Notes under the pieces: generated by a model
Told to the model about the DNA's origin: nothing
What the model saw: the letters and a program-made list of their open reading frames with translations, nothing else
The model's database searches: none
Source: Mytilus trossulus
Taxonomy: Eukaryota
DNA length: 64,000 bases
Direction: 5' to 3'
Assembly (NCBI RefSeq): GCF_036588685.1
Contig: NC_086378.1
Span: forward strand, 26,908,001-26,972,000
Program-made: the position numbers and the translations under genes
Part shown: piece after piece, positions 3,301-64,000 of the stretch
Layout of the letters: each line of letters opens with the position of its first letter
How positions within the stretch are numbered: the first letter of the stretch is position 1

Positions 3301-6300
3301 ATATCCAATTTTTGATACAAACGCAACCATGTTAGGCCTTTTAGGAATGGTATGGCGATTTCGTCGTCGTCGTCCAAAGACATTTGGTTTCCAGACAAGA
3401 ACTTGAGTATAATTGTATGGATCTCTATCAAATTGTTCCAAAAGGTTCCATATCACAAAAGAAATTTTGGGATTGATTTTGACTGTTATTGCCTTAAATT
3501 GCTTTGGAATTAGAGGCAAAAAACAATACTTTTCTAATACTTTGTAAACATTGCTTATTTTTTGACCTATTGCCATGGGTTTTGATTTACAGTGACCTTA
3601 ATTCTTATGAGTTTTATATGTGTGAAATCTCACTGTATATTTATATTTTAAATTTGGGTCCCGTTTTAAAAGTGGCCTACATTAAATCCCGACCGGTCCA
3701 CAATTAAATTTTGTTTGAATCCAACAAAAAAATAATTATTGGGGTTTCTTTGATATGCTGAATCTAACCGTGTATTTATATTTTTGATTTTGGGCTCGGC
3801 TTTCATGTTGGTCAATATTCAGGTCCAAAGGGTCCAAAGTTAAACTCAGTTTGATTTTTAAAACAAATCTAATTATTGGAGTTCTTTGATGTGCTTTGCA
3901 ACTTGTGCTGTGTACATTTTTATTGTGATACAAGTGGTGAACATTAGCTGCATACATTTTTACCGTGATATCGTGTTGATTCTTATTACCGCAATTGTGA
4001 TGTGTACATAATATTTTTAACTTATTATCGTCGTAATATTTTAAGACTTTTAAAATATTTCTTTTAGTCGTACATATTTTTAATGTAAATATAAAGATAT
4101 CCGCAATCTCGGTGTGTAAATTAAATTGCTCATCCGATAATAAGTGGAGTGCTCCGATTAAACGGAGGTGAATACCTGTACAGAACAGAACAGAACAGCT
4201 GAATCTCAACGTGTATTTAAATTTTTTTTAGCCCAGTGTTTAGTTGGTTCAAAATCAGGGTCTAAAATTAAATTTTGTTTGACAAAATGAAATATTTTGG
4301 GATCTTTGATATGCCGAATCCGACCGTGTATTGAGATTTTGAATCTTGGGTCCCGTTGTCAAATTAGTCCACATTGAGATCCAAAAGGTCTAAAATAAAA
4401 AAAAATGTTTGATTTCATAAAAACCAGAATGATTACCTTGGGTTCCTCGATATGCTGAATCTAACCATATATTCAGATTCTGAATATTGAACCTTTTTAC
4501 ATGTAATAGGTAAATTTTCAATTTTTTAAAAGATCTTAAACCACATTCATTCCGTGTCAGAAACCAATGCGGTGTCAAATATTTCATCACAATTCAAATT
4601 CAGAGCTGTGTCAAGCTTGAATGAAGTGTCCATACTTGCCCTTACTATTCAGGGTTCGACCTTTGCGGTCGTATCAAGCTGTACTCTGTAGAACAATTAA
4701 TTCATACTTCAAGTAGTGGGGGCATTAACATTTGTTTACAAAATTTAGGCAATTCTGTATTTCAGTCATGGCGTTGTCAGTTTATTTACGACTTTGAATG
4801 TTCCCTTAGTATATATCACCTCCCTTTTTCTTACATGCTTCATAGTAGTTTCTTCTAATAGATAATTTTATTATCTATATTTGGCTTGTATTACATACCC
4901 TCATTGGTTTAGATAGGATTGCTGCCTACAAGGGAGTTATCAAACCAATATATTCTGTTTGTTAAGTTGAAATCATACATTCGAAAATTTCTTGGACGCC
5001 ATCAAAGTAAGATGACCGTTATGGAAAATCTCTTTCACAGACGACGACGTGTATATTCCAGTTTTCGAAACTAAAACACTGTCCTCTTTTCCTCAAATGT
5101 GACCTACCGAATTAAGACTTTTCACCGGATTTTTACTCCCATGAGCAAGTTGATAGGAGCAAAAGTTGAGCAGGATATGCTCACCTTTCAAGGAATACCT
5201 GATACAACCCCCAGTTTTCGGGGGGGGGGGGGGGGGGGGGTGTTGCTCAGTGTTAAGTTTTCTATGTTGTGTTTTGTATATATTAGCCTTTTCTGTCATT
5301 TTTTCAGTTTTTGTTTTGCCACAGTTTGTCAGTTTGTTTTATCCCTTGGTATCTTTCACCTTTTTTTTTGTTGATGATATGAAATTTAGTTAACTTTTAT
5401 CATAATTCATCAAGGATTATAAAATCTACATATTCTCAGTTGGCGTTTCAGGAAAAAGAACTTCACGAACTTAAAATAATAGACAAGTACATTGAATGCA
5501 TAATTTGTGTTCTTCTGAAAGATGTACAGTACATGTCTTTAACCTTAGTTATATAAACAAATACGAAAAATCTTGTTACTAATTTATAAGGTTGAAATAT
5601 CCCAAATGAAAAGCAAATGGTGAAGTAGATTTATAAAACAATAGTTTTGATACCTTTATTCTGTTGTGTACTGTATAGCTTTGTCTCAGTTATTTCACTT
5701 GATAGATAGAAACAATGTTCTAATACCTTTTTCATGTTGTGTTATGTATAGCCCTGTCTCAATTATTTCACTTGATAGATAGTAACAATGTTCTTATACC
5801 TTTATCATGTTGTGTTATGTATAGCCCTGTCTCAGTTATTTCACTTGATAGATAGTAACAATGTTATGCAACTCATAACTATCTTCAAATTCGCATTGCA
5901 GCCACTGGACAGGAAAACAAAATTAACAGCTTTGCTAATTTATAAGGTTGAAATATCCCAAATGAAAAGCAAATGGTGAAGTAGATTAATAAAACAATAG
6001 TTTTGATACCTTTATTCTGTTGTGTACTGTATAGCTTTTTCTCAGTTATTTCACTTGATAGATAGAAACAATGTTCTAATACCTTTTTCATGTTGTGTTA
6101 TGTATAGCCCTGTCTCAATTATTTCACTTGATAGATAGTAACAATGTTCTAATACCTTTATCATGTTGTGTTATGTATAGCCCTGTCTCAGTTATTTCAC
6201 TTGATAGATAGTAACAATGTTATGCAACTCATAACTATCTTCAAATTCGCATTGCAGCCACTGGACAGGAAAACAAAATTAACAGCTTTGTTTGAAATTC

Positions 6301-8287
6301 TGAAATATTCAAGGAGTATGACATTTCACACAATTCTATGTCCAGGCAGAAATATAATTGTAACTCGGGTACCTCTGATTGTTGAGTGGTACACCATTTA
6401 ATCTATGCTCACGTTAACAGTCAGAACAATATTGTTTTTAACTTACTCTATAAGATAAAATTTATCTTGTTTTAAGATTGGAATAGTTATCAAAAGTACC
6501 AGGATTATAATTTTATACGCCAGACGCGCGTTTCGTCTACATAAGACTCATCAGTGACGCTCAGATCAAAATAGTTAAAAAAGCCAAATAAATACAAGGT
6601 TGAAGAACATTGAGGACCCAAAATTCAAAAAAGTTGTGCCAAAAACGGCTAAGGTAATCTACATATATCACGTTGGAACCTGTTTAAAACATTTATCATT
6701 TAAATATCCGTCAATAGTTTTTTTATCTTAAAATTGTTGTGACCTTATCAAATTTGCTCTTGTAAATAATCTTTCTACAAAACAATCTGTAGTTTTGTGG
6801 CTTTGTTGATGAACATCCCGCATATTCCTCTATTCTTGTTAATTTATTGAACATTTTTAACTACGGAACTATTTCAGCTCTAAGTATTTTGTTCCATGAT
6901 AAGATAACTACCGTTGATTAATATTTTGCCAGGTTATGGTCGCTGTTTGGTCGACTTCTTCTACTACAGAGAACTGGACTTGTGTTATAAATTAGAACCT
7001 ACTATTCAAATATCCGTTGTTCATGAAGATTTTGTGTGTCCAGGAAGTGAGCTCATGCGTATCGATTCCAATGAAAGACAAGATTATATCAAGCTTGTTA
7101 CAGGTAATCAAAGTAAATACAATTGAGAATGAAATAAAAAAAAATATGAAAACTACACGTTATATATTGTAATACGTCCAAAGCGCTATTCTAAATTTAC
7201 CTTCATCAGGAACGCTCACAGCCGAATATTTGAAAGCCAAGGGTTAACAATACCGAAAAGTAACGTAATATATGTAAGTACTAAATCATTATATTTTATT
7301 TTTACTTTGCTAATATGCAAAGTTATAGTTATGAAAAAAATGCAATAAGATTGCAGTTTCTTTTAATAGTGATGAAAATAGAAAGAAAAACATATTTCTT
7401 TATTCAAAAAAAGAATCATTAGATTTCCAAAATGATTCGGTTTCAATCATTTGCAATCAGACGCTTAAAACTAATTTTTGTTTTCATTACATTGAAAAAG
7501 ATAATATATCAGTAGTTCCTTTCCCATGATGTTTAAATCAGACATCTCAGATACTCCTCAGCCACATTTATCTTATATACATAATAATTAGTGCCTCATA
7601 CTCGAGTTTTCCTGGATGCTACTAAGTCTTTATGATTATCTTTTGAATCAATTGTCTTCGACTTTGGTACAATTCATTGTTTGGAAATCTATTTTGATTA
7701 TTTATACGTCGGAGAACAGGCTTCTTCCGGACGATATTAAATTAAGAATGTATAAATCACGATAGGGTAAGTGCTTTGGTTTAAGATACTTTTTTTGGCA
7801 GCTGTGTGAAAGTTCAAGTCCACGGCGGCAATTATTATACTGCAATTTTAACGAAAAACGGTTTCTTCTCCTTCAAATCAACAGAGACCGGAGCTCGGAC
7901 TATGTACCATGGTGCTTCTGCGGTTAGGAAAGTTTGGAACACTTATTTTTACATGCATCAACTAAGTTGAGTCCTTCATGGATTATACAATAATTCCTGG
8001 AGGATTTCTTTCCCTTATTTTATAATTATTACAGGCAAACATTTATTTCAGCTGACATCGGAAGAGTGTACAGTCATGGAATATGTATACAAGGTAAAAA
8101 GTCACAAGGAAAATGGACGTACAACGATGGATCTACAATGGAGTATTTCAGGTGGGACCAAAATCAACCAAGTGAATATTCTAACGTTATCGCCATGATT
8201 CGGAACCAGAACTACAAATGGAGGAATCCTACTCGTGTTAGCGACCCATGTACATATATGTGTGAATATCGATCACTGAATAATTGA
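363..8287 (+). CDS. Secreted PAN/Apple-domain + C-type lectin-domain protein, 3 coding exons (363-690, 6933-7103, 8052-8287), ~244 aa
   Basis: Exon 1 has a hydrophobic signal-like N-terminus and the PAN pattern ECTVKCVSNTRCLSFFYN...CILH. Exons 2-3 encode a CTLD (CYK...C...LMRIDS..Q; WTYNDG...FRWDQNQP...W...YMCE). Both introns are GT-AG and phase 1, and the exons total 735 nt in frame. An alternative start Met at 384 is possible. Confidence 0.85.
1455..1860. repeat. Degenerate ~21-bp minisatellite (atatacttatatgatgtgcaa-like)
   Basis: Recurring tatatgatgt(a/g)caa units are visible; they explain the His/Ile-rich ORF 1591-1800. Confidence 0.85.
2557..2830 (-). mobile_element. tRNA-derived SINE copy with (ttga)n tail
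   Basis: Similar to 30945-31118, with a degenerate tRNA-like head at the right end and a (ttga)n microsatellite at 2557-2595. Confidence 0.55.
3310..4700 (+). mobile_element. Helentron-type non-autonomous element (HINE-like) with internal core repeats and a ~300-bp nested insertion (~3897-4197)
   Basis: Subterminal IR gatacaaacgca / tgcggtcgtatc, (cgt)n microsatellite near the 5' end, and repeated gatatgctgaatctaacc cores at ~3752, ~4309 and ~4449. Confidence 0.6.
5578..6290. repeat. Direct tandem duplication of ~356 bp with ~59-bp internal subrepeats
   Basis: taatttataaggttgaaatatccc...aaattaacagctttg occurs twice; ORFs 5788 and 6168 share identical peptides. Confidence 0.9.
6517..6560 (-). 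ncRNA. Minimal type I hammerhead ribozyme with intact core, within a dispersed repeat copy (6480-6662)
   Basis: Reverse complement reads gcgtca-CTGATGA-gtc ttatgta gac-GAAA-cgcgcg-TC-tggcgt: stem I, core, stem II, palindromic stem III and a GUC cleavage triplet. Confidence 0.85.
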
Positions 8288-36459: not shown

Positions 36460-37800
36460 GAATCCTTTCCATTATTACCTGGCTGATAGTTATTATATCA
36501 ATTAAATACATTATATCAATCTCAATGGGACACACCGTACATTGTGTATAACATTGACCCAAAAAGTGAGAAAAACTGCAATGTGAGATTTATAAGAATG
36601 CCAATATTATATATGACCGACAGCATATGATGACCCCTCAAATAAGATCTACAAAAATGCCAATAAGATTGGACAGTCTATATGATAACCCCTCAAAATA
36701 AAATCTACAAAAATGCCAATAAGATCGACATCATAAATGATGACCCCTCAAAGAAGATCTACAAGAATACCAATAATAATGGAATCCTTTCCATGATTAC
36801 CTGACTGATAGTTGTTATATCAATTAAATACTTTATATTAATCTCAACGGGATACACCAAACGGTGTGTATAACATCGACCCAGAAAGCGAAAAAAAAAC
36901 AGTAATGTGAGATCATTATATTAATCTCAATGGGATACACCATACATTGTGTATAACATTGACCAAAAAAGTGAGAAAAACAGCAATGTGAGATCTATAA
37001 GAATGCCAATATTATATATGACCGACAGCATATGATGACTCCTCAAATAAGATCTACAAAAATGACAATAAGATTGGACAGTCTATATGATAACCCCTCA
37101 AAATAAGATCTACAAAAATGCCAATAAGATCGACATCATAAATGATGACCCCTCAAAGAAGATCTACAAGAATACCAATAATAATGGAATCCTTTCCATG
37201 ATTACCTGACTGATAGTTGTTATATCAATTAAATACTTTATATTATTCTCAACGGGATACACCAAACAGTGTGTATAACATCGACCCAGAAAGCGAAAAC
37301 AAAACAGTAATGTGAGATCTATAAGAATGCCAATATTATATATGACCGACAGCATATGATGACCCCTCAAATAAGATCTACAAAAATGTCAATAAGATTG
37401 GACAGTCTATATGATAACCCCTCAAAATAAGATCTACAAAAATGCCAATAAGATCGACAGTATATATGATGACCCCTCAAAGAAGATCTACAAAAATGCC
37501 TATAAGATGGACAGTATATATGATGACCCCTCAAAGAAGATCTACAAACATGCCAATAAGATCGACAGTATATATGATGACCCCTCAAAGAAGATCTACA
37601 AGAATGCCAATAAAATCGACAGTATATATGATGATCCCTCAAATAAGATCTACAAGATTGACAATAATAAGACCGACAGCATATGATGACCCCTCAAAGA
37701 AGATCTACAAGAAATACCGATAAGATCGACAGTATATTTGATGACCCCTCAAATAAGATATACAAGAATGGCAATAAGATCGACAGTATATATGATGACT
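36460..37800. repeat. Complex tandem array: 54-bp unit (aagatctacaaaaatgccaataagatcgacagtatatatgatgacccctcaaag) within higher-order ~320-400-bp blocks
   Basis: The unit gives an 18-aa periodicity in ORFs 37367-37723; the block marker aatcctttccat(g/t)attacctg occurs at ~36461, ~36783 and ~37188. Confidence 0.9.
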
Positions 37801-40419: not shown

Positions 40420-42870
40420 TGAATATGTATCGCTTTAAACCATCTCTAGTCTAAACGAGTGTCCAATCAATATGTCGCCCAATAAATAGTCCGGAGTCTA
40501 GACGAGTGTATATTAAATATGTCGCATTTTAAATCGTCACAAGTCAAGAAAAGTGTTGAATCAACATGTCGCGAAATCGTCCCGAGTCTGTACAAGCGTT
40601 ATATTGATAAGTCTCACTTTAAATCATCCCGAGCATAGAAAAGCGCCATATGAAGATGTCTTGCTTTAATTTGTACCGAATCTAGACAAGTGTGAAATCT
40701 AATTGAAAAAGTTTTGTTTAAATTGTTGCGATACTAGACTTGCTTCAAATCAATATGTCTCTCCTTAATCGCCCCAAGTCGATTTAAATGGAGAATCAGT
40801 ATATCTCGATTTGAATCGTTTCGATTCTTAACAAGCAACACATCAATATGTCTCGCTTTTTATCGTCCCGAGTCTAGACAAGCGCCAAACCAATATCTTG
40901 CGTTTTAATTGTCCCGATACTAGACACATGTCAGATCAATATGTTTTGTTTAATTTGTCCACATACTAGACACATGTCAGTTCAATATGTTCCGTTTAAT
41001 TGTCCCGATACTACACACATGTCAGATCAATATGTCTCGTTTGAATTGTCCCGATACTAGACACATGTCAGATCAATATGTTTCGTTTGAATTGTCCCGA
41101 TACTACACACATGTCAGATCAATATGTTTCGTTTGAATTGTCCCGATACTACACACATGCCAGTTCAATATGTTTCGTTTGAATTGTCCCGATACTACAC
41201 ACATGTCAGATCAATATGTTTCGTTTGAATTGTCCCGATACTACACACATGTCAGATCAATATGTTTCGTTTGAATTGTCCCGATACTACACACATGTCA
41301 GATCAATATGTTTCGTTTGAATTGTCCCGATACTACACACATGTCAGATCAATATGTCTCGTTTGAATTGTCCCGATACTACACACATGTCAGATCAATA
41401 TGTTTCGTTTGAATTGTCCCGATACTACACACATGTCAGATCAATATGTTTCGTTTGAATTGTCCCGATACTACACACATGCCAGATCAATATGTTTCGT
41501 TTGAATTGTCCCGATACTACACACATGTCAGATCAATATGTTTCGTTTGAATTGTCCCGATACTACACACATGTCAGATCAATATGTTTCGTTTGAATTG
41601 TCCCGATACTACACACATGTCAGATCAATATGTCTCGTTTGAATTGTCCCGATACTACACACATGTCAGATCAATATGTTTCGTTTGAATTGTCCCGATA
41701 CTACACACATGTCAGATCAATATGTTTCGTTTGAATTGTCCCGATACTACACACATGCCAGATCAATATGTTTCGTTTGAATTGTCCCGATACTACACAC
41801 ATGCCAGATCAATATGTTTCGTTTGAATTGTCCCGATACTACACACATGCCAGATCAATATGTTTTGTTGGAATTGTCCCGATACTAGACACATGTCAGA
41901 TCAATATATTTCGTTAGAATTGTCCCGATACTAGACACATGTCATATCAATATGTCTCGTTTGAATTGTCCCGATGCTAGACACGTGTCAGATCAATATG
42001 TCTTGTTTAAATTTTCCCGATACTAGACACCTGTCAGATCAATATGTTTCGTTAGAATTGTCCCTATACTAGTCACATATCAGATCAATATGTTTCGTTA
42101 GAATAGTCCCGATACTAGACGCGTGTCAGATCAATATGTTTCGTTAGAATTGTCCCTATACTAGTCACATATCAGATCAATATGTTTCGTTAGAATAGTC
42201 CCGATACTAGACGCGTGTCAGATCAACATGTTTCGTTAGAATTGTTCCTATACTAGACACATGTCAGATCAACATGTTTCGTTAGAATTGTTCCTATACT
42301 AGACACATGTCAGATCAAAATGTTTCGTTAGAATTGTCCCGATACTAGACACGTGTCAGATCAAAATGTTTCGTTAGAATTGTCCCGATACTAGACACGT
42401 GTCAGATCAAAATGTTTCGTTAGAATTGTCCCTATACTAGACACGTGTCAGATCAATATGTTTCGTTAGAATTGTCCCAAAACTAGACACATGTTAGATC
42501 AATATGTTCCGTTAAGTTGTTCTGATACTAGACACGTGTCAGATCAATATGTTTCGTTAGAATTGTCCCTATACTAGACACATGTCAGATCAATATGTAA
42601 ACTGTAAAATAGTAAATTGTAAAATAGTAAACTGTGTTATAAGTATGTCCCGTATCAAATCGTCTCGAGTGAAGACAAGGGTCAAAATAATATGTGTCAT
42701 TCGTAACATTCCAGCGTGTTTGAAAACAAGTGTGAAAAAAATTGTCTCGCGTAAACCGTTCAAGGTCTGGAAAAGTGCCAAAACAATATGTCTACCCTTT
42801 AATCGTCCCGAGTCTGGATAAGACTCAAAACAAACTGTCTTCCTTTAAATCTGACCGAGTCTAGACAACT
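40420..42870. repeat. 46-bp satellite (aattgtcccgatactacacacatgtcagatcaatatgtttcgtttg); homogeneous core ~40905-42597, degenerate flanks
   Basis: Head-to-tail 46-bp period (e.g. 41044 to 41090) with no unique spacers. Confidence 0.95.
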
Positions 42871-58524: not shown

Positions 58525-59272
58525 TTGAATTTCAAAATCATGTTAATTACTATTAATTAGATTGCTTTATATTCATATATATGTTTATCACAATGGCTGA
58601 ATGCTTTATTATTCACACTAAGTATTGACGACACTTTGAAACATTCCCTTGAACACCTTCTTTTCATATGATATCCTTCGAATTTTAGTGGATTGGACTA
58701 AGATTTACTTAGTAAAAATGTTGATGTCCAGGCACAAACTGGGTAAATCCCTTTGTATTCATACATACTACTTAATAGCATGACAGGCCGGTGAATCTAA
58801 TGTTTTACTGGTCAGATGAAGCGTGTTTGAAGAGAAGAGTCAGTAATTCCTATACATGTATCATTGTCATTTTGTTTAGTTTCTTTTGTTATCATTTCTG
58901 ACATTGGACCCGAACTTCTTTCAAACTGAGTTTTACTGTGTGTAGTGTTGTGTGTTTGTTTTTCTACATTGGCTAGTGGTATAAGGGAGGTTTGAGATTT
59001 CAAAAACATGTTTAACACATTTTAACGCTTTTTTTGGCCTTTTTTAGTCTTGTATGCTTTAATTTTTTGTTTTTTTTATATATTTTGAGGTTTAGTAATA
59101 CGTCCATTATCACTTAACTAATACATATTTTTGTTTAGAGGTCAGCTGAAGCACGCCCTGTGAGTAGTATTTTCGTGCTGTATTGAAGACCCATTAGTGG
59201 TCTTGTCTGTTTTCTGCTCATTGGTCGGGTTGTTATCTCTTTGACACATTCCCCATTTCCATTCTCAATTTT

Positions 59273-61038
59273 ATGAGTCTTATGTAGACGAAACGCGCGT
59301 CATAATCCTGGTACTTTTGATAACTATTTACACCACTGGGTCGATGCCACTGCTGGTGGACGTTTCGTCCCCGAGGGTATCACCAGCCCAGTAGTCAGCA
59401 CTTCGGTGTTGACATGAATATCAATTATATGGTCATTTTTATAAATTTTCTGTTTACAAAACTTTGAATTATTAAAAAAACTAAGGATTTTCTTACCCCA
59501 GGAGTAGATTACCTTAGCCGTATTTGGCACAACTTTTTGGAATTTTGGGTCCTCAATGCTCTTCAACTTTGTATTTGTTTGGCTTTTCAACTATTTTGAT
59601 CTGAGCGTCACTGATGAGTCTTATGTAGACGAAACGCGCGTCATAATCCTGGTACTTTTGATAACTATTTACACCACTGGGTCGATGCCACTGCTGGTGG
59701 ACGTTTCGTCCCCGAGGGTATCACCAGCCCAGTAGTCAGCACTTCGGTGTTGACATGAATATCAATTATATGGTCATTTTTATAAATTTTCTGTTTACAA
59801 AACTTTGAATTATTAAAAAAACTAAGGATTTTCTTACCCCAGGAGTAGATTACCTTAGCCGTATTTGGCACAACTTTTTGGAATTTTGGGTCCTCAATGC
59901 TCTTCAACTTTGTATTTGTTTGGCTTTTCAACTATTTTGATCTGAGCGTCACTGATGAGTCTTATGTAGACGAAACGCGCGTCATAATCCTGGTACTTTT
60001 GATAACTATTTACACCACTGGGTCGATGCCACTGCTGGTGGACGTTTCGTCCCCGAGGGTATCACCAGCCCAGTAGTCAGCACTTCGGTGTTGACATGAA
60101 TATCAATTATATGGTCATTTTTATAAATTTTCTGTTTACAAAACTTTGAATTATTAAAAAAACTAAGGATTTTCTTACCCCAGGAGTAGATTACCTTAGC
60201 CGTATTTGGCACAACTTTTTGGAATTTTGGGTCCTCAATGCTCTTCAACTTTGTATTTGTTTGGCTTTTCAACTATTTTGATCTGAGCGTCACTGATGAG
60301 TCTTATGTAGACGAAACGCGCGTCATAATCCTGGTACTTTTGATAACTATTTACACCACTGGGTCGATGCCACTGCTGGTGGACGTTTCGTCCCCGAGGG
60401 TATCACCAGCCCAGTAGTCAGCACTTCGGTGTTGACATGAATATCAATTATATGGTCATTTTTATAAATTTTCTGTTTACAAAACTTTGAATTATTAAAA
60501 AAACTAAGGATTTTCTTACCCCAGGAGTAGATTACCTTAGCCGTATTTGGCACAACTTTTTGGAATTTTGGGTCCTCAATGCTCTTCAACTTTGTATTTG
60601 TTTGGCTTTTCAACTATTTTGATCTGAGCGTCACTGATGAGTCTTATGTAGACGAAACGCGCGTCATAATCCTGGTACTTTTGATAACTATTTACACCAC
60701 TGGGTCGATGCCACTGCTGGTGGACGTTTCGTCCCCGAGGGTATCACCAGCCCAGTAGTCAGCACTTCGGTGTTGACATGAATATCAATTATATGGTCAT
60801 TTTTATAAATTTTCTGTTTACAAAACTTTGAATTATTAAAAAAACTAAGGATTTTCTTACCCCAGGAGTAGATTACCTTAGCCGTATTTGGCACAACTTT
60901 TTGGAATTTTGGGTCCTCAATGCTCTTCAACTTTGTATTTGTTTGGCTTTTCAACTATTTTGATCTGAGCGTCACTGATGAGTCTTATGTAGACGAAACG
61001 CGCGTCATAATCCTGGTACTTTTGATAACTATTTACAC
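59273..61038 (+). repeat. 341-bp x ~5.2 tandem array of a hammerhead-containing unit (non-LTR retrozyme-like)
   Basis: Five identical 88-aa ORFs are spaced 341 bp apart. Each unit carries gcgtca-CTGATGA-gtcttatgtagac-GAAAC-gcgc-GTC and is homologous to the dispersed copy at 6480-6662. Confidence 0.92.
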
Positions 61039-62320
61039 TTGTGTTATACATGCTATCATCCCATACATTCCCTGTTATGTGGATATCAATCAACTAAGAG
61101 CTTGATAAATTCCTTCGCGAGAAACCAAAATGTGTTCCGCATCTTAAAGCAATTGGAAAGCTTTTCAGAATAACATCCTTGACAAAATTGCAAAATTTTG
61201 TAGCAAGTGGGGCAAACAAGAAAAAGTTGAACAAACCGATAATGTGGTATGGGCTTTGGTCATTGTTGAAGGCCGCATCGTGACCTATAGCTGTACATTT
61301 CTGTGTCATGTGGTCTCTTGTGAAGAGTTGTGTCATTGTTAATAATACCACATTTTTTTTTATATATATTATAGATAAATGAACATTGATAGCAGATGTC
61401 TCATAGAATAATGATTGATTGATTTTTAGTTGGTTCGTGTCCGATGGAAACATTTGTTTGCATGTTCAGGATTAGAACATATTTACCACTAAATACAATA
61501 GGTAGGACCTGTAATAGAGGCCGTTCGTAGTAAATGTTGTTGAACGTGAGACTGCATATCCGATGTATTTAGAATAAGATCTAAACTTCAATCATTACAC
61601 ATGCCTAATCACCAGCGGATGTGCAGTAAACAGTGGTGGCATTTCCGTTAAGAATTGAGATTTTTCAACTTTAAATTATTCAGTATTTTCCCCCATAGTG
61701 GTATCATAAATAAATTTAGTAAGCCAATTGAATGGACTTTTGTTAAAACATGATTCGCATTGTTTTGTTGTGATAATATCCGATCTCAATTAAGTCCTAA
61801 AAGATATATAACATGTTATTCCTTGACATATTTAAGGTTTTCTGGCTTAACAATTGTAAAAGTTGGTTATGGCAGGATATTTAATTATAAAATATAGTAA
61901 AAGGTATTAGATTATGGTTGTCAGACATAGAACACTTGTCATCATTTGATTTGCATTCGTCCCTCAAACTTATAGTTTACTTCACTAGTTTGTGAATATT
62001 TCAAATCATTCATTAGATGGTTGGTATTTATTATCTAAGCTGCACACATTACTTATGATGTAAGCAGTTGTTACCCTCAAAAGCCTTAAATCCTGGTAGA
62101 CAAAATGTAGCTGTAACAATTATAGTTTGTTTTCCGTTACACTTATATATTTTATATATGTATACAGGATTCATTGTGTTCTTTACAATGTAATATGTCT
62201 ACCTATCCCATTGATAAATGAATTGGAATAATACACATTATTCACCAAATAGCTATTTAACACGGATATCGATGTTATACTGGAAGAACACATTTGAACT
62301 TATTGCGCATCTTATGAAGT

Positions 62321-63421: not shown

Positions 63422-63602
63422 ATTGTACTCTTCTGTTACATGAAAAAAGACTAGCTTCGTTTATATTCATCCAGTCTGAAACAAAGATATGGCTTATATT
63501 AAGATCATGAAAATAAAGTTAGACAAAAAGTAAATAAAAGTAAATATAAATATACACCAAATGGTTAGCAAGTCGATTACAAAAGTAACCAAAAAATGTA
63601 CA

Positions 63603-63910
63603 CGGAGGCGTCTATTAAAGTGTGTATGTGTTTGTAGATGGAGGCGTCTATCAAAGTGTATATGTGTTTGTAGATGGAGGCGTCTATTAAAGTGTATATG
63701 TGTTTGTAGATGGAGGCGTCTATTAAAGTGTATATGTGTTTGTAGATGGAGGCGTCTATTAAAGTGTATTTGTAGATGGAGGCGTCTATTAAAGTGTGTA
63801 TGTGTTTGTAAATGGAGGCGTCTATTATAGTGTATATGTGTTTATAGATCGAGGCGTCTATTAAAGTGTATATGTGTTTTTAGATGGAGGCGTCTATTAA
63901 AGTGTGTGTG
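63603..63910. repeat. 36-bp minisatellite (gatggaggcgtctattaaagtgtatatgtgtttgta)
   Basis: About 8 head-to-tail copies; they explain the CRWRRLLK ORF. Confidence 0.92.
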
Positions 63911-64000
63911 TGTTTGTGAGTGTGTGAGAAAGAGATACATTTTCTGGAATCTTCGTAAATAAGTTCTTTTAAAATTGATTTGTATTAGAAGCACATAGAA

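Follow-up and report, generated by a model that had tools for sequence, protein, structure and literature searches.

The tandem array at positions 59273–61038 (plus strand) of the window, by which we mean the whole 64,000-nt stretch of DNA analysed, is built of mussel retrozyme units, and every one of its six unit junctions lacks the same 14 nt, starting exactly at the bond that a hammerhead ribozyme would cut. The element itself is of an already known kind; the array-wide deletion at the scissile bond is new. Judging from the sequence, we consider the chances evenly balanced that the array is a recent retrozyme insertion reverse-transcribed from one processed RNA monomer, circularised with the 14 nt missing. 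The core of this proposal comes from a first-pass annotation of the same DNA, according to which a monomer lost nucleotides from its 5′ end, was circularised and gave rise to multimeric copies; this would be the best single explanation of the junctions and is the one we favour, unproven as it is.

Structure, family and insertion of the array

The array runs from unit position 313 to unit position 32 and has a GC content of 0.39. Tandem Repeats Finder reported a period of 341, 5.2 copies and 100% matches, and a script found the 341-nt periodicity to be perfect across 1766 of 1766 bases (5.18 copies) with zero differences among the five full units, which confirms the tandem structure with identical units described at first pass. 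Direct reading of all six junctions (59287–59314, 59628–59655, 59969–59996, 60310–60337, 60651–60678 and 60992–61019, all on the plus strand) agreed with that annotation too: each reads ...GACGAAACGCGCGTC|ATAATCCTGGTAC, i.e. GTC|ATAATCC, with the join after 59301, 59642, 59983, 60324, 60665 and 61006, respectively. The 14 absent bases, TGGCGTAnnAAATT, lie directly after the cutting point in normal copies. As no base is common to both sides at either edge, the deletion breakpoints are unambiguous, and the earlier claim that the deletion starts at the GUC scissile bond holds with unique edges. The join is blunt and without microhomology, and its left edge coincides exactly with the scissile bond; an origin of the deletion by slippage between short repeats was considered and rejected, no base being shared at either edge. 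The first junction is preceded by only 29 nt of unit sequence, and the sixth is followed by the canonical 3′ tail of the family, 32 nt long. Because both of these terminal partial junctions are deleted, the original insertion had at least two deleted junctions, and its template thus re-used one deleted junction. Other tandem arrays in the window consist of 46 nt × 38 copies (40842–42598), nested 54/405-nt repeats (36509–37799), 356 nt × 2 copies (5579–6290) and 36 nt × 9 copies (63597–63917).

The hammerhead and several other blocks of the unit match the published circRNA consensus of M. galloprovincialis (PMC7229834 supplement), which ends ...GAGCGTCACTGATGAGTCTTTTGTAGACGAAACGCGCGTC (PMC7229834). 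What had been called retrozyme-like is therefore, by sequence homology, the published Mytilus non-LTR retrozyme family (Cervera and de la Pena 2020, PMC7229834). Metazoan non-LTR retrozymes are tandem repeats of 150–450 bp with low GC and no LTR, PBS or PPT, and those of M. galloprovincialis comprise ∼350–390 bp repeats with ∼5000 type I hammerheads in two families, expressed as linear and circular RNA with the circular forms dominating the RNA pool (PMC7229834). The array fits the short-repeat, low-GC description (341 bp, 5.18 copies, GC 0.39) and is flanked by unrelated DNA. It shares with the M. galloprovincialis elements a repeat of ∼350 bp, one type I hammerhead with a 2-bp helix III in each repeat, a low GC content and a copy number in the thousands, but differs in that its units are 341 bp long and the 3′ strand of helix I is gone at every junction.

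Normal relatives are abundant. The window holds a dispersed, 5′-truncated half-unit copy of the array's family on the minus strand (6480–6662, unit positions ∼205 to 27), whose junction is intact and reads ...GCGCGTC|TGGCGTATAAAATT|ATAATCC...; its 14 nt occupy 6509–6522, just as the first-pass annotation had it. In the assembly searched, which amounts to 1.3 Gb in 14 large contigs, a genome-wide pattern search for GACGAAACGCGCGTC-N{0,30}-ATAATCCTGGTAC matched 13,188 junctions, and the spacer was 14 nt in every junction among the 100 matches listed. Other arrays of this 355-nt family have a spacing of 355 nt. The array units are 98–99% identical to 355-nt units across the genome, the closest normal units being two substitutions apart with the 14 nt present. 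Searched as a 28-mer, the zero-spacer junction has six occurrences in the genome, each of them inside the array, and a genome search with a looser pattern that allowed any helix III loop returned no further GTC|ATAAT junctions, so that no source copy of the deleted junction was found in the 1.3-Gb assembly. A lone copy, old and diverged, at C5:67.54 Mb (L094/L098) has GTC|ATAAGCC.

Across 17 fetched loci (L006–L030), the 3′ ends of the family are fixed at unit position 25–32 (...GATAACTAT[TTACAC]; the family's 3′ end reads ...GATAACTATTTAC), and its 5′ ends are scattered over positions 313, 1, 167, 38, 57, 309, 273, 288, 205, 310, 12 and 264. A fixed 3′ end with variable 5′ ends is the signature of target-primed reverse transcription with 5′ truncation, and the array shares it: with a start at 313 and an end at 32, it is a family-typical insertion in all respects but its junctions. 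The young array L010, with four identical 355-nt units, is likewise homogeneous, so multi-unit insertions with uniform units are not unusual. Several upstream flanks in the family share their last few bases with the element's own 3′ end (CTAT, TTTACA), a hint of microhomology at integration.

The left flank of the array is itself a repeat. A 5′-truncated copy of a very abundant non-coding repeat (58856–59272, plus strand; more than 3400 candidate copies) abuts the array's first base with its canonical 3′ end, ...CATTCTCAATTTT. The ORFs beside other copies of this repeat contained no transposon domain, one of them being an unrelated C1q gene. We found no target-site duplication immediately flanking the array; an 8-bp TATACATG, at 58851–58858 and again at 61045–61052 (both plus strand), 6 nt beyond the array end, is a tentative candidate that brackets the array together with the abutting repeat. 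The chance expectation is ∼0.5 such 8-mer matches in the region searched, and it is notable that the left copy is placed at the truncation point of the repeat. The repeat and the array could thus be a composite, i.e. a single chimeric template-switch insertion.

Penelope-like elements, which insert as 5′-truncated partial tandems (PMC8557442), have been proposed as the mobilisers of animal retrozymes (PMC8557442; 10.64898/2026.07.22.740005). The array resembles them in its 5′ truncation, its tandem organisation and the short ‘tail’ at the insertion end, but its link to them comes from the literature and not from a reverse transcriptase sequence here. Since these elements form partial tandems in insertions that are typically 5′-truncated (PMC8557442), and since the abutting repeat at 58856–59272, which TATACATG encloses together with the array, could reflect a template switch in the same event, the array might have arisen with no circle at all, from a cleaved linear monomer that had lost 14 nt from its 5′ end and was copied repeatedly by a reverse transcriptase jumping from that 5′ end to the GUC 3′ end. 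We regard this as quite improbable, because it requires six successive jumps back to the same trimmed molecule with no base gained or lost, and because circular forms dominate the RNA pool of mussel retrozymes (PMC7229834).

The hammerhead remnant and its predicted activity

In each array unit a hammerhead remnant ends with GUC. The one at 59605–59642 (plus strand), which repeats every 341 nt, comprises the 5′ strand of stem I, GCGUCA (59605–59610), the CUGAUGA box (59611–59617), stem II and GAAA, with a stem III of 2 bp within the palindrome ACGCGCGU. In the dispersed copy, the Rfam model Hammerhead_1 matched positions 6517–6560 (minus strand) with 33.0 bits and paired GCGUCA/UGGCGU as helix I, so the 14 nt include the 3′ strand of that helix. 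On the array the same model scored 26.3 bits (E = 5e-4), and its sole helix I alignment ran via UGGUAC (59650–59655, plus strand), a pseudo 3′ strand located 7 nt from the cleavage site, with the seven bases AUAAUCC bulged out as a 7-nt insertion after C17. At the Rfam gathering threshold (34 bits) there was no hit in the whole window, the array scoring 26.3 and the dispersed copy 33.0; the hammerheads of the window are visible only in Rfam E-value mode. The first-pass annotation held that the 3′ strand of stem I had been removed, and its loss is confirmed, with the qualification that the weak look-alike UGGUAC is left 7 nt downstream. At 59333–59394, where it had placed a further hammerhead-like junction on the opposite strand, the minus strand has GACGAAACGTC but gave no Rfam hammerhead match at E ≤ 10.

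In the Rfam RF00163 alignment, the array keeps the conserved core CUGANGA...GAAA...GUH with helices II and III closed; what it fails to form, both in the alignment and in constrained folding, is a helix I with the bases that immediately follow the cleavage site. Unconstrained MFE folding around the junction returned the hammerhead fold for neither version, and constrained folding was used instead. With the core and helices II and III fixed, the intact copy closes the three-way junction at –4.4 kcal/mol, and the array version folds without stem I at –0.1 kcal/mol. A complete monomer-releasing type I hammerhead in each unit, present in normal members of the family and in the dispersed copy, is absent from the array. 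Given that the 3′ strand of helix I is missing at every junction, the array is predicted to be cleavage-dead and unable to release monomers.

The look-alike strand raises the alternative that a DNA deletion arose at one junction that still cleaved weakly at GUC, with UGGUAC as a substitute stem I, in which case the 341-nt monomer would have come from the normal cleave-and-ligate route. Rfam still aligns helix I with the 7-nt bulge (26.3 bits, E = 5e-4), and where the core is intact ∼40% of the deletions that start inside stem I start at position 0, the scissile bond. We nevertheless consider residual cleavage very improbable: constrained folding gave no stem I, and the assembly contains neither a source junction nor any other progeny of the variant. 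In addition, a stretch of seven unpaired bases immediately downstream of the scissile bond should disturb the hammerhead active site.

Breakpoints at the scissile bond and a second array

The significance of a deletion that starts at the scissile bond depends on where deletions in this family ordinarily start, and the first-pass annotation had proposed tabulating breakpoints relative to GUC. We carried out three gap-pattern searches, from GAAACGCGCGTC to CCTGGTA (103 hits, 100 listed), from TGTAGACGAAAC to CCTGGTA (135 hits, 100 listed) and from CACTGATGAGTC to TGGCGTA (162 hits, 100 listed), fetched 84 loci from them and placed the breakpoints by automatic comparison with natural reference spacers. 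The left breakpoints of the 58 distinct deletion alleles of at least 8 nt spread from –7 to +10. Position –7, which is the edge of the search and carries an AC microhomology, accounts for 11.6 alleles, position –1 for 5.75, position 0 (the scissile bond) for 6.75 and each of the other positions for 0.5–4. Starts at the scissile bond thus make up ∼10% of the alleles (6.75/58), a mild excess of ∼2.8-fold over the mean and near the value for position –1. The tabulation bears out some enrichment at the scissile bond, but the breakpoints are scattered and there is no unique hotspot. It follows that the position of the array's deletion is a coincidence worth ∼1 in 10, not 1 in 341.

Most ordinary deletion alleles sit on short repeats (GCG, AC, GCGT, GTC). 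Among blunt deletions, a T|A end is seen in 3 of the 5 with a start at the scissile bond, as against 2 of the 20 with a start elsewhere (Fisher one-sided p = 0.038 in a post hoc test).

The variant junctions around the cleavage site are diverse. A recurrent 22-nt deletion, CACTGATGAGTC|TGGCGTA, was seen at ∼22 loci (e.g. C1:96461571 and C2:42141725) and takes out most of the hammerhead between two GTC triplets; GAAACGCG|TACTAAATT and GAAAC|TAAATT are further recurrent microhomology deletions. A 16-nt deletion from GUC (GTC|AATCC) occurs as a single-junction copy four times in 170 kb (G000:C3:24921171, 24951490, 25045553 and 25089000), probably by segmental duplication. In both families the GTC triplet at the cleavage site can be doubled (GTCGTCTGGCG; L052, L074, L076, L083, L088 and L092), and GTC followed by CT is common among variant junctions, the fetched examples reading GTCCTGGCG. 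At several loci (L042, L053, L054, L055, L081, L093 and L095/L096) unrelated DNA follows directly after GUC; these may be insertions primed at the cleaved 3′ end of a linear RNA, or later rearrangements. The 2.2-unit array L101 (G000:C57:1241500-1244500) lacks only U1.1 at 3/3 junctions (GTC|GGCGTAT), and this loss of the first base after GUC was also seen at three other loci.

Among the hits listed (100 of 103, 100 of 135 and 100 of 162), two canonical arrays and no others share a hammerhead-disabling deletion at successive junctions, the array at 59273–61038 and a second one at C2:74.81 Mb (L097, G000:C2:74813000-74822999, minus strand). The latter belongs to the sister family and contains 4.9 units, and 5/5 of its junctions read GTC|AGTCCTGG with 19 nt (TGGCGTATATACAAAATTT) lost. 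Its deletion, like that of the first array, starts exactly at the scissile bond, and it ends at T|A (U|A). It is 5′-truncated and has the canonical 3′ tail, and it is old, with units 82–91% alike and a later 2.6-kb insertion splitting it; it is an independent replicate of the signature seen at 59273–61038. A tandem at C5:83.82 Mb with a shared hammerhead-internal deletion was set aside, as it is not a canonical array but a 190-nt chimeric repeat. This tandem (L200, G000:C5:83820500-83827500) has 2.4 copies, in which a retrozyme fragment with a truncated hammerhead is fused to other sequence, and the same 190-nt chimera occurs at two loci (L200/L201) that are 9 Mb apart.

The deleted junction is also present in public sequence data. 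Both of the sampled 31-mers that span it occur in 20 runs, which come from 10 studies and bear several organism labels; nine of those run rows, from four studies, carry no flag as a possible source of the assembly. Among these runs, no RNA data set was identified. The deleted junction is therefore real, neither an artefact of the assembly nor private to it. Logan contigs of four runs, aligned to 58950–61350, gave no piece bridging the junctions or the flanks, as they were swamped by the repeat family, and left the bins at 61056–61217 nearly without cover. No deleted junction was present in the metagenome contigs scanned, among which the normal one occurs in only six. A collapsed or mis-polished repeat could account for perfectly identical units in a repeat context, where copy number is hard to verify, and the Logan contigs supplied no bridging piece at the locus; with both junction 31-mers in 20 runs from 10 studies, including the nine unflagged rows from four studies, we consider such an artefact extremely improbable. 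The same spread bears on the earlier suggestion of one recent event. The identical units agree with it, but a distribution over 20 runs is difficult to square with an event of very recent date, unless the allele occurs widely or homogeneity of the array has been maintained.

Alternatively, an ordinary DNA deletion at one junction, starting at the scissile bond by chance, could have been spread by unequal crossing-over or gene conversion, either within the array at 59273–61038 or within a source array, from which an uncleavable block was transcribed and then copied into cDNA as a linear multimer. The surroundings of the site are rich in deletions, ∼10% of which start at position 0, and the junction words are widespread in public runs, which suggests that the allele is not brand new. 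In two other arrays (L015 and L028) units that are not adjacent match each other exactly, whereas those next to them differ, a pattern that is higher-order structure or block duplication and that indicates DNA-level exchange or heterogeneous templates. Moreover, the scenario put forward in a 2026 preprint is one of Penelope-like origin and subsequent local amplification via unequal crossover (10.64898/2026.07.22.740005). We still regard a spread DNA deletion as unlikely, though it deserves serious consideration. As in satellite DNA variants produced by unequal crossing-over, the variant is present in all repeats of the array; in satellite arrays, however, the edge repeats normally escape homogenisation, whereas here both terminal partial junctions carry the deletion despite homology of only 29 and 32 nt, and the units are without any other differences. 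Further points against it are that the assembly contains no source or mixed array, that no canonical array among the listed hits (∼400 matches) has a deletion shared by some but not all of its junctions, and that L097 would need the same 1-in-10 coincidence.

Joining of RNA ends as a proposed origin of the array

We favour RNA joining on the strength of four observations: all six junctions are deleted, the join is blunt, there is no source copy in the assembly and L097 replicates the array. The route that we envisage would begin with self-cleavage of a multimeric transcript at GUC, which leaves a 2′,3′-cyclic phosphate end and is established in the literature for the family. The first 14 nt of the monomer would then be lost by a cut after UU, at the U|A bond, leaving a 5′-OH. 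Non-enzymatic RNA cleavage, or endonucleolytic cleavage of the cyclising type, would be expected to cut after U, and such a cut provides the 5′-OH that an RtcB-type ligase requires. A sequence-independent RNA ligase of this type may have joined GUC>p to the new 5′-OH, the product being a circle of 341 nt that lacks the 3′ strand of stem I; in vitro, RtcB converts mussel retrozyme monomers into circles (PMC7229834). Being unable to re-open, such a circle would be a stable template. The mobilising reverse transcriptase of the family would start at its usual internal site, at unit position ∼32, and round the circle 5.2 times before the cDNA integrated. That circRNA serves as the template of reverse transcription and yields oligomeric tandem cDNA is the published working model for these elements, described by its authors as tentative (PMC7229834); the array would speak in favour of that model. 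An array that cannot be processed into monomers would leave no progeny, which fits its uniqueness in the genome.

Further considerations weigh against RNA joining. A fixed internal start site would be equally usable on an uncleaved linear multimer transcribed from a lost source array, and a DNA deletion could land at the scissile bond by chance, as 6.75 of the 58 alleles do. Taken across both arrays, the broader proposal is that array-wide deletions with a start at the scissile bond are genomic fossils left by ribozyme-processed RNAs whose ends were mis-joined, with GUC>p linked to a 5′-OH formed after U in an AU-rich stretch, and that the resulting non-cleavable circle, or a re-used monomer, served as a template for multi-round reverse transcription; in our estimation this falls slightly short of an even chance.

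A parallel outside the retrozymes is found in the circRNA-derived pseudogenes of mammals, where a junction that exists only in circRNA is kept in genomic DNA after retrotransposition, as proposed here for the array. Those pseudogenes preserve back-splice junctions and were copied by LINE-1; the array junction would instead join a ribozyme-made end to a trimmed 5′ end, and would do so in tandem.

The formation of animal retrozyme arrays is unsettled between rolling reverse transcription of circRNA (PMC7229834) and local amplification of DNA (10.64898/2026.07.22.740005). A junction that is possible only after ribozyme cleavage and re-joining, and that is found at every unit boundary, would be a natural marker separating the two models, and the question is thereby reduced to a simple census over mussel assemblies and circRNA data sets. 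RNA joining also predicts a class of mis-ligated circles that resist self-cleavage. If it is true, the arrays at 59273–61038 and at C2:74.81 Mb would provide direct evidence at the genome level, for the first time, that arrays of animal retrozymes originate from individual processed RNA monomers and not from satellite expansion at the DNA level.
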